DNA of 64,000 bases from NCBI RefSeq assembly GCF_964204645.1, contig NC_134031.1:5022001-5086000 (forward strand). The letters are read 5' to 3'. Source of the DNA: Tubulanus polymorphus. Its lineage: Eukaryota; Animalia; Nemertea. The notes under the pieces were generated by a model. The model was not told where the DNA came from. It searched no databases and saw only the letters and a program-made list of their open reading frames with translations. Of this stretch, positions 16,420 to 19,400 are shown in pieces (within the stretch, counting starts at the first letter, position 1; each line of letters starts with the position of its first letter). The position numbers and the translations under genes were made by a program.

Positions 16420-19400
16420 TTACCAAACTTGACACTTATGGACCGGATTCATCGGCGAGCCTGACGGACAGCTGTAAGCCTCGGAAAACTCTTTAGTATT
16501 CGATACCGAGCCTATAACTCTGAAAATGTCCATAAATCAAGATGTTTAGTTTCTATGCTCAGACGGTTGATGCATTTAGAACCATGGGAAATTATCGAGG
16601 CATTTCTTAATTGAAATACTCAATTGGATAAGATATGATACGTATACAATTAAATTAAAATACCGCAAAAGCTAAATGGTGAAATTAAATATATATGTTT
16701 TGCCGGGAAGAAGCAATTATTCTATGTTCATGGTCTAATGGAAGCTATAGGCATAGGACGACTAATTCCAGTCGATAGATAAGAAGCGAAATCCACCACG
16801 ATCTGAAGTTGGATATTCTACTCAAATTCTCTACCGAATCGTTAGATTTATATCGACGTTTTCTTAATAAAACTTGCTCCAGTTACATATGATGGCTATC
16901 TCCATAGACTGGCACGGAAAGAGCCACGATCACGCGAGCGTTTTTGGCCCGTGCCAAATTTGGCAACTGTTCACATAAACTTGCCAAATTGGCCCTTGCC
17001 TTGTTTGGCTCGACCAACAACGTCGGATCAGGCCGAGAGATGGACTTAAGCACGGGCCAAAATAATGATCGCGTTTGAATTGCAACTGGTTCCGGATGAT
17101 ACTCGCTTCGCTTTGTTTGAGTATTGTCCAGTATCGAGTGACACGAGCCAAATTTGGCTCTCGGGTCTGGTCCGTGCCATTTTGGTCAGGACAAAATCGT
17201 CTCCGTGTGATCGCGGCTTTCTCTGGCGATCGATGGAGGTAGCCTCGTCTCCTTTGCAGTCTCGACAATTAAATCTATTTGATTCAAGAGTGGTATGTGT
17301 CCTAGTCTTACCGTAAGCGTCCTGGGCTGTGTCGACCGGAACGTAATATGCCGACATAGCTCTCTGGTCGGGCCTTACCGCACCACACCTGCGCGTCATA
17401 GTAGATAATATTTAGGTAAAGAGAATCAAAATATGCATATAGAAGCTGAAGCTTAAAGAGCATTGATCACACGCGTAAAACTAAACGAAATTTGAAAAAC
17501 AAAGCATTCGGGATGGATATCCCTTTTCTAAGTGTACGTTTCTCGTGATTTCATAGCTCTCGAAACTTTCGAGTCGTTACCGATTATAAAAAGTGCAGCG
17601 AAAAGGAAAAGAAGGTTTACGCGACGCAGACGATAGAACGAAGACGATAATATACGGGGATTAATCAGACGAGATGCTGTGACTGCTACTGCATGCATGC
17701 GTGGTGCGCGTTAAAATTACCCCGCGATTGAAGTCGAAATAGAGAACTCTTGACAGAACGCCAAAATGTTGAAGACTTTCTCGGATTGCCATTTGGAATG
17801 AAAACTTAAAGCCGTGTTCAAACTTCGTTATTTAGAACGTTCCAATCTAAATCGTATCAAGCGTTCACACTTAGCGAGAATTCATTAAATTTGTTCCTTT
17901 CCATTAGAACAATCTAAAAGATCGTTCCAGGTCCGTTGAAGTTTCTAGGACGGACGTTTTCCTATGTAAGAATAGAAACCTTGCTTTCATTATCTGTAAG
18001 TCTATGGACTAAAAGCTTGTCCATGGTTAGTCACGGAGTTGTGTCCAGCTGTACCAGTGTCGAAAACGTGAATGAAAGCACAGAATTTGGTCCGTTCCAG
18101 GTATGGGCCAAAATAGAACGGACTATGACTAGCCATAGTGTGAACGCCTTAGTTCAGCTGGAAATGTAAGTGGCCCTTGGTACAGACCGAATTTGTTGGT
18201 ACGCCACGTGATTTCTATATTTCACTTCAACCATTTTAGGGGTAATTGGGAAGGATATCTATCACCGACATACCTGAATTCACCGGGGCTGTGTCGACCT
18301 GTACTAATTCTGTTAATATAAGCCTCGTCTCGTAAAGTGCCACACCAAACCTAATGTAAGAACCACGCACACGTTAGCACATCTACGTAACAACGACAGG
18401 CTAAAAAAATCGATACCTTGTTTCTCCTTTCTGCTTAGCTTAAAAGTTGACCTGGCCAGCCGCCTGATACCCTGGACTCGGTTTTATAGACTGGTATAAT
18501 CTTTAACCTGGGGGTTATCTCGACAGAAAATGAATTGAGTTAGCCCCAGTCTATAAAAGTGAGCCCTGTACTTTTTCTAAAATCGTGAGACATTTTACCA
18601 TTACAAAACCGGTAGCTAGAGAAATTAAATGAACTGATTACAAATTTTATTGTATTTCACAAAATGACCCGGCCGCTGCGGAAAAAAAGGTATCATTTTT
18701 GTTTAGCCTAAACATTACCACTACTCGCACTGGGCACACGGCGTTCAAATCGTACAATGTATATCGTATCAAGCTTAGGCAGCCAAGAACTTTTTACCGG
18801 ATTTTCCTAAGAAGTTTGTTTATTTTGAGCGATTGAACTCGGAATTTCAAGATCATAGAACCGGGTTCCCTCATTTTGCGTCATAAACCTCCCAGCCAAT
18901 TTTTGTTGCATATAGCCAGTACGAGTGTGATAAACCATAAAAGTCAAACAAACTAACAAACAACAAACAAACGAAAACGGATTTTCTTGTTAGTAAAACA
19001 TGAACAAATTACTAAGGTGTGTTCGTAACACAAAAACACGTGTCTACACTTCTATAATACCAGCATTCATCATGCTCAGCCTAGGTCTCCGAAACACTAT
19101 ATAATGATATTTTTCGATGCACACTATTTCGGTGGCCTATTCCGTATTTCAAAAATTTACAATTCCCCGAACGAACCAGCTGACAGGAATGTTTTGCAAG
19201 AATTAAATTCAGCAGATTGAATGAAATCCTAATCAAATCGTACACGTTTAGCAAGATGGGTAATCCGATGTAAAGTGAGTCATCATGTCAGCTGCGCGGT
19301 TCCGGAAGTGTATACGTATATAGATAGGGTTTGAAAACAGACGAAACAATGAACGTCAAAGGTATGGTGTATTTTATACGCTTAAAACCAGCATTATACA

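Follow-up and report, generated by a model that had tools for sequence, protein, structure and literature searches.

A conserved tandem exon pair and a candidate dual-acceptor RNA pairing in a neprilysin-type peptidase gene of the nemertean Tubulanus polymorphus

The 64,000-nucleotide (nt) stretch of the Tubulanus polymorphus genome considered here (contig NC_134031.1, positions 5,022,001 to 5,086,000; hereafter the window, in whose coordinates positions are given unless another locus is named) is animal DNA with a G+C content of ∼39%, and its minus strand carries a gene for a peptidase of the M13/neprilysin type that spans ∼15 kb, from ∼31250 to 16420. Near the 3′ end of this gene lies a tandem pair of homologous exons, here called 2A and 2B, and the intron that separates them contains a short element complementary to the acceptor regions of both. 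The exon translations are collinear with a Mytilus neprilysin-4-like protein (P0035; 52% identity over ∼830 amino acids (aa) by tblastn), and the closest full-length protein match is the product of a Lineus longissimus gene, with 53% protein identity; exon searches were run one exon at a time, and the full-length comparisons used database proteins. The domains PF05649 and PF01431 are carried by all relatives, and the hallmarks of M13 enzymes, namely an HExx-type motif, VWC...HSP..R and a C-terminal C.VW, are present in the exon translations. By these sequence features the host gene is identified as an M13 (neprilysin/ECE) peptidase gene.

The constitutive exon that precedes the pair (AYRDW...LFFLNFAQ) occupies positions 19507-19614 of the minus strand, with its GT donor at 19506-19505, and was placed by its translation, by tblastn with P0035 and by a boundary that is as in Lineus. 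Downstream of it on the same strand are exon 2A (18274-18350) and exon 2B (17312-17388), each of 77 nt and 26 aa letters and each delimited by translation and comparison with Lineus, and then the last coding exon (16420-16519), which contributes (R) plus 32 aa before the stop and was placed by translation, tblastn and the Lineus comparison. The GT-AG introns around the pair measure 1156, 885 and 792 nt, and the middle one, between 2A and 2B (17389-18273), is single copy according to its sequence and word depth. The two exons are homologous, of equal length and 56% identical at the protein level, and both keep the VWCG, the HSPG and the terminal Arg of the VWCG...HSPG..R segment that they encode. 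In human neprilysin (NEP) this segment holds the transition-state residues His711 and Arg717. The host gene has a second exon pair, formed by the HExxH exons at 24102-24035 and 21667-21600 (minus strand), which are 68 nt each, again not a multiple of three. Duplicates of the HExxH exon also occur in Lineus (locus L008, 18737-18811 and 20335-20409), in the chiton Liolophura (L011) and in Owenia (L010).

The evidence for alternative use of 2A and 2B is comparative and comes from the annotation of orthologues. For the Lineus longissimus orthologue (L008) there are 11 RefSeq isoforms, four of which (X1, X2, X4, and X5) are each 771 aa long and differ only at residues 714-738. The Lineus genome carries five copies of the 77-nt exon, and the last two are most like the T. 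polymorphus pair and stand in the same order, 2A being nearest to variant v3 (isoform X1) and 2B to variant v4 (isoform X2). The orthologue of the brachiopod Lingula anatina (L009) has isoforms X1 and X2, of 776 aa each, whose only difference is at residues 719-741, which derive from two tandem exons, and in the annelid Owenia fusiformis (L010) there are two copies of the exon, the first of them unannotated. A single VWCG exon is found in Mytilus (L005), another mollusc (L007), the chiton Liolophura (L011), a Lineus paralogue (L006), two paralogues in the T. polymorphus genome itself (L003 and L004) and a Capitella gene (L012) that resembles these last two. The orthologous exons are thus annotated as mutually exclusive in Lineus and in Lingula, and since Lineus, Lingula and Owenia all carry copies of the exon, 2A and 2B are, judged from these gene structures, an ancient pair belonging to a cluster older than the annelid/brachiopod/nemertean split. 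No report of mutually exclusive exons in the neprilysin genes of these phyla was found in the papers searched. The deep conservation of the cluster is a more solid result than the splicing switch considered below and holds regardless of it: nemerteans, a brachiopod and an annelid have all retained this exon as an alternative cluster, and the gene is accordingly well suited to studying the enforcement of exclusive splicing beyond arthropods and vertebrates.

Some further features of the orthologous clusters were recorded. The unannotated first VWCG variant of Owenia (L010 49234-49310; IWCGKYRPESARSRILTGVHSLNKF) is of an 'HS-x-N' type, which is also the type of the first variant in Lineus and in Lingula and which the T. 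polymorphus gene appears to lack. The Lineus cluster occupies L008 23786-26779 (OU343003.1), and at 24109-24185 it includes a recent near-copy of the first variant and of its flanking intron; this copy starts with LSCG instead of IWCG, is used in no annotated isoform and may be a pseudo-exon.

The element in the intron between 2A and 2B, CGCACCACGCAUGCAUG, lies at 17692-17708 on the minus strand, has a wider footprint of 17712-17689 and is the top shared partner of the two acceptor regions. Site A, GUGUGCGUGGU (18362-18372), is located 12-22 nt upstream of exon 2A, between the likely branch point CUAAC (18378-18374) and the 2A AG, and pairs through 11 contiguous nt with the core of the element, giving an element:A duplex of -18.7 kcal/mol (RNAduplex). 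Site B, CGCGCAG/GUGUGGUGCG (17379-17395; the slash marks the intron-exon junction), spans the 2B acceptor, reaches 10 nt into the exon, and pairs with the element at 15 of 17 positions, 10 of them contiguous plus extensions, in a duplex of -23.3 kcal/mol. The sequences and coordinates of all three segments and the extent of both pairings had been reported in a first-pass annotation of the window, and each was reproduced on the minus strand; two further short helices that it had described with the A region are likewise present in the minimum-free-energy fold of a 1.1-kb segment. The same annotation attributed to G-U pairs a dependence on the transcribed strand, in agreement with which the opposite-strand duplexes are weaker (-19.8 and -13.9 kcal/mol), the sense strand being the stabler by 3.5-4.8 kcal/mol. 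An ACCACGC core is common to both duplexes, so that their footprints on the element overlap, and the GCACCAC core of the element is the antisense of the exon start GUGGUGC, which carries the Trp-Cys-Gly codons. A likeness to the exon-start motif GUGUGGUGCG is shared by site A (-22 to -12, intronic) and site B (-7 to +10, across the junction). Element, site A and site B are all single copy in three read runs over the stretch, and a scan of 16300-19700 against Rfam gave no match, hence no intronic small nucleolar RNA, microRNA or known structure.

This arrangement suggests that the element (17712-17689) may act as a competitor between the 2A and 2B acceptors of the type known from the human ATE1 gene, a reading that fits best of those weighed here but is plausible rather than proven, and that we hold tentatively. 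Under such a mechanism the core of the element would pair with one partner at a time. The element:A duplex would cover the interval that separates the branch point from the 2A AG and loop out exon 2A, the element:B duplex would cover the 2B AG together with the 10 exon nt that follow it, and in each transcript only one of the two acceptors would be left exposed. We infer that the duplexes could form in vivo and could influence splicing in T. polymorphus.

To assess how far the dual pairing exceeds chance, all 20-nt windows of the 2A-2B intron were scored for pairing with the acceptor windows of the two exons (-40 to +20). The element proved to be the best intron partner of each acceptor (-22.2 kcal/mol for A and -26.0 kcal/mol for B), and the best dual value was matched in six of 148 dinucleotide shuffles scanned at the same step as the real sequence (p ∼0.04); a null with a coarser step, which had given 3/261, was biased low and was replaced by this one. 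Elsewhere in the gene, none of 5,791 windows across the remaining 11.6 kb matches the dual score of the element, the best reaching -21.1 kcal/mol, and when six combinations of acceptor and donor targets were considered over the whole cluster the element again came first, with -22.2 against -19.4 kcal/mol for the runner-up, a gap of 2.8 kcal/mol. Pairing probabilities of the element core in the ensemble fold of the 1.1-kb segment are 62% for the A region and 14% for the B region. The dual complementarity is thus real and moderately unusual, without being decisive.

Several observations count against a switch, some within T. polymorphus and others from the comparison of species given further below. 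The first-pass annotation had proposed duplex energies against shuffled controls as a check, and here only the dual pairing stands apart: taken singly, the pairings fall within the shuffle range and are ordinary, their values being matched in 30/148 shuffles for A (p 0.20) and 15/148 for B (p 0.10). The dual p of ∼0.04 is itself modest and attaches to a hypothesis formed post hoc. A census of the 3.2-kb pre-mRNA counted 230 contiguous helices of at least 10 bp, among which several are stronger and the two cores rank only 10th and 13th, and both acceptors have other partners in the upstream intron, an equally strong contiguous one for site A at 19303-19293 and a comparable contiguous one for the 2B acceptor at 19369-19360. 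The ensemble probabilities shift strongly with the boundaries of the fold (20-62% for A and 0.2-14% for B). Contigs from three read runs over the stretch contained no splice joints, these contigs being genomic-DNA-like.

Much of this would be expected if the complementarity were coincidental and the exclusive use of the exons came from the reading frame, splice-site strength and protein factors, an explanation that we regard as distinctly possible, if somewhat doubtful. The variant exons must open with the Trp-Cys-Gly codons UGGUGYGG, which makes both acceptor regions GU-rich, and any CA-rich patch of intron would then match both. The exon length of 77 nt means that double inclusion or double skipping would shift the frame and lead to mRNA decay or a truncated protein, so that exclusivity could be explained without RNA structure. 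Both exon pairs of the gene (77 and 68 nt) are non-multiples of three, and the Lineus isoform X11, a frameshifted skip product, illustrates exclusivity at the level of the frame. Coincidence sits less easily with the rank of the element as the best dual partner of the entire gene and cluster and with the strand asymmetry of the pairing. Should the pairing be due to chance, it would carry a caution, namely that duplicated exons resemble one another in sequence where they begin, which makes 'dual' complementarity easy to obtain.

The same pre-set dual-pairing test was applied to the clusters of Lingula, Lineus and Owenia and to the other exon pair of the host gene. In Lingula, an element GGGCACCAUGUCUGU (L009 25055-25069), ∼120 nt downstream of the first variant, pairs through 11 contiguous bp across CAG/AUGUGGUG and through 13 bp across AUAG/AUAUGGUGU. 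Its dual value was matched in two of 138 shuffles (p ∼0.014) and the duplex with the second exon (vB) in none of the 138. Its 25-kb gene has no better dual partner, and in the remaining 23 kb no window equals it. This significant and independent analogue, the strongest such case, is a further point against coincidence. The other tests were negative: no significant dual element was found in the Lineus v3-v4 intron (p 0.30) or in Owenia (p 0.39), and no dual element in the HExxH exon pair of the host gene (p 0.24), the last of which shows that exon duplication as such is not enough to set the test off. In Lineus there is a weaker analogue, GCACCGGAUC, ∼107 nt downstream of v3, which forms 10 bp over the junctions of v1 and v3, a pairing that is equalled or beaten by background windows. 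With the discovery case excluded, the three independent species give a combined p of ∼0.05 (hand calculation).

Conservation of the pairing was sought in the introns themselves, covariation in orthologous introns being another check that had been proposed for it. No intron sequence of the T. polymorphus gene can be aligned with Lineus, so the element is not conserved there, and the usual proof by conservation and covariation is absent; at a protein identity of only 53% the missing alignment is unsurprising. What the elements of T. polymorphus and Lingula and the weaker one of Lineus have in common is the sequence GCACC, the antisense of the GGUGY (Trp-Cys codons) that opens every variant exon. 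From this a broader reading can be framed, in which a recurrent 'anti-exon-start' element would govern the neprilysin cluster of annelids, brachiopods and nemerteans; we consider it rather improbable. An intronic GCACC sequence downstream of a variant exon would be antisense to YAG/RUNUGGUGYGG, that is, to the acceptor and the Trp-Cys-Gly start, and the selector, lying within coding sequence, would be inherited by each exon duplicate, allowing one docking element to address all variants. If true, this would explain the growth of the cluster to five copies in Lineus and would be the first exon switch based on competing structures to be described for Lophotrochozoa.

A different role for the same nucleotides is suggested by GCAUGCAUG, at 17692-17700 on the minus strand, in which two GCAUG motifs overlap, one of them extended to UGCAUG, the Rbfox consensus. 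The UGCAUG (17697-17692) is separated by 577 nt from 2A, upstream of it, and by 305 nt from 2B, downstream of it. The element might accordingly be a protein-binding site to which an Rbfox-type splicing factor binds, base-pairing being incidental or modulating access to the motif; this is unlikely, and it is not exclusive of the coincidental explanation. By the usual position rule for Rbfox, as in Caenorhabditis elegans egl-15 and in FGFR2-type regulation, such a site would favour 2A, the upstream exon, and repress 2B, the downstream one, in whichever tissues the factor is expressed. With an expectation of 0.26 occurrences, GCAUGCAUG is present a single time in the 64-kb window and holds the only UGCAUG of the cluster, and (U)GCAUG recurs a short way upstream of orthologous variant exons: Lingula vB has three copies in the 60 nt before it, Lineus v4 has one at a distance of 65 nt, and a UGCAUG stands ∼12 nt before the acceptor of the first Owenia variant. 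Enrichment of the motif in the clusters is nevertheless weak (p 0.37 in T. polymorphus, 0.06 in Lineus and 0.13 in Lingula), and 305 nt from 2B is about as far as Rbfox typically acts. A Fox-1_C domain was not found in an exon-by-exon search of the genome, in which the RNA recognition motif (RRM) domain was not sought; this negative is uninformative.

Returning to competition between the acceptors, the first-pass annotation had inferred that one element silences either exon but not both. This is supported in part. The anatomy of the site, the core shared by the two duplexes, the strand specificity of the pairing, the rank of the element as best dual partner, the exclusive annotation of the orthologous exons and the analogue in Lingula speak for it, and the modest p, the lack of a conserved intron and the negative results in Lineus and Owenia hold it back. 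If it is true, a switch of the ATE1 type, with one competitor and two acceptors, would extend from vertebrates to a lophotrochozoan, and RNA folding would decide, through an exon that codes for residues of the catalytic pocket, which variant of a neuropeptide-degrading enzyme is made.

The introns on either side of the pair contain repeats. A high-copy, transposon-like repeat at 18398-18821, in the intron upstream of 2A, reaches a word depth of up to ∼44,000, compared with ∼31 for single-copy sequence, and contigs have loose ends at 18398 and 18412; it stops ∼30-50 nt before the 2A acceptor, and site A is outside it. Another high-copy repeat, at 16824-17267 in the intron downstream of the pair, has a depth of up to ∼6,900 against the same single-copy value of ∼31, holds inverted repeats (17062-17049 versus 16955-16942, a perfect 14-bp match) and looks like a miniature inverted-repeat transposable element (MITE) or other transposon. 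Duplication is also seen among the neighbours and paralogues of the gene. The 3′ end of a compact paralogous M13 gene is present in two near-identical copies, at G000:C7:685041-685118 (plus strand; L003) and C7:5148093-5148170 (minus strand; L004), which are on the same contig in opposite orientation, ∼4.5 Mb apart, and represent a segmental or an assembly duplicate. On the plus strand of the window, a neighbouring RhoBTB gene is found twice (1472-1495/10925-10948 and 4140-5183/13733-14815), with identical short peptide matches ∼9.4 kb apart. In Lineus (OU343003.1, 11.83-11.91 Mb), a single-variant M13 paralogue (L006) lies ∼30 kb upstream of the orthologue (L008), in tandem with it.

Several known systems can be compared with the T. 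polymorphus arrangement. In chicken beta-tropomyosin, sequence of the intron between the alternative exons pairs with the region of the downstream exon, 6B, and represses that exon. The use of inter-exon intron sequence against a downstream exon region is shared with the candidate element, whereas in the chicken system repression runs one way only, the upstream exon offering no alternative partner. Rbfox control of the egl-15/FGFR2 type likewise places UGCAUG in the intron between exclusive exons; it is mediated by protein and needs no RNA-RNA pairing, and the site here is a single one, 305 nt from the downstream exon.

The first-pass annotation had drawn its parallel with the arthropod systems of Dscam1, 14-3-3zeta and Mhc. 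Dscam1 exon 6, 14-3-3zeta, Mhc and srp do share with the proposed switch competing long-range intronic pairings, a choice of one among several and tandem-duplicated exons (PMC4691838, PMC6071210). In those systems, however, the docking site is usually outside the cluster, whereas the element here is between the exons, pairing activates the exon adjacent to the selector, whereas masking of acceptors is proposed here, and the docking sites are the most conserved of intronic sequences, which is not seen here. A tighter parallel than these is offered by human ATE1, which is the exact precedent (PMC7797038). For mutually exclusive exons in general, an excess of competing complementarity has been described, and tandem exon duplication is expected to create competing selectors (PMC6071210).

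In human ATE1, the element R3 in the intron separating exon 7a from exon 7b competes for R1 and R4, each of which lies just upstream of one of the exons (Kalinina et al., NAR 2021, PMC7797038). The duplex hides one 3′ splice site, destruction of R3 leads to double inclusion, and the mechanism has been proven by compensatory mutations and antisense oligonucleotides (PMC7797038). The T. polymorphus gene has the same parts, a tandem pair of homologous exons and one element in the intervening intron that is complementary to both acceptor regions and would form one duplex at a time. It departs from ATE1 in that R1, R3 and R4 are highly conserved in vertebrates, the T. polymorphus pairing being known from sequence alone, and in that R1 and R4 are homologous copies with the same offset, whereas sites A (-22 to -12) and B (-7 to +10) are not, a difference to be added to the points that count against the switch. 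The mechanism proposed for exons 2A and 2B is therefore of a known kind and, if real, would be the first of its kind in Lophotrochozoa as far as the literature consulted shows.

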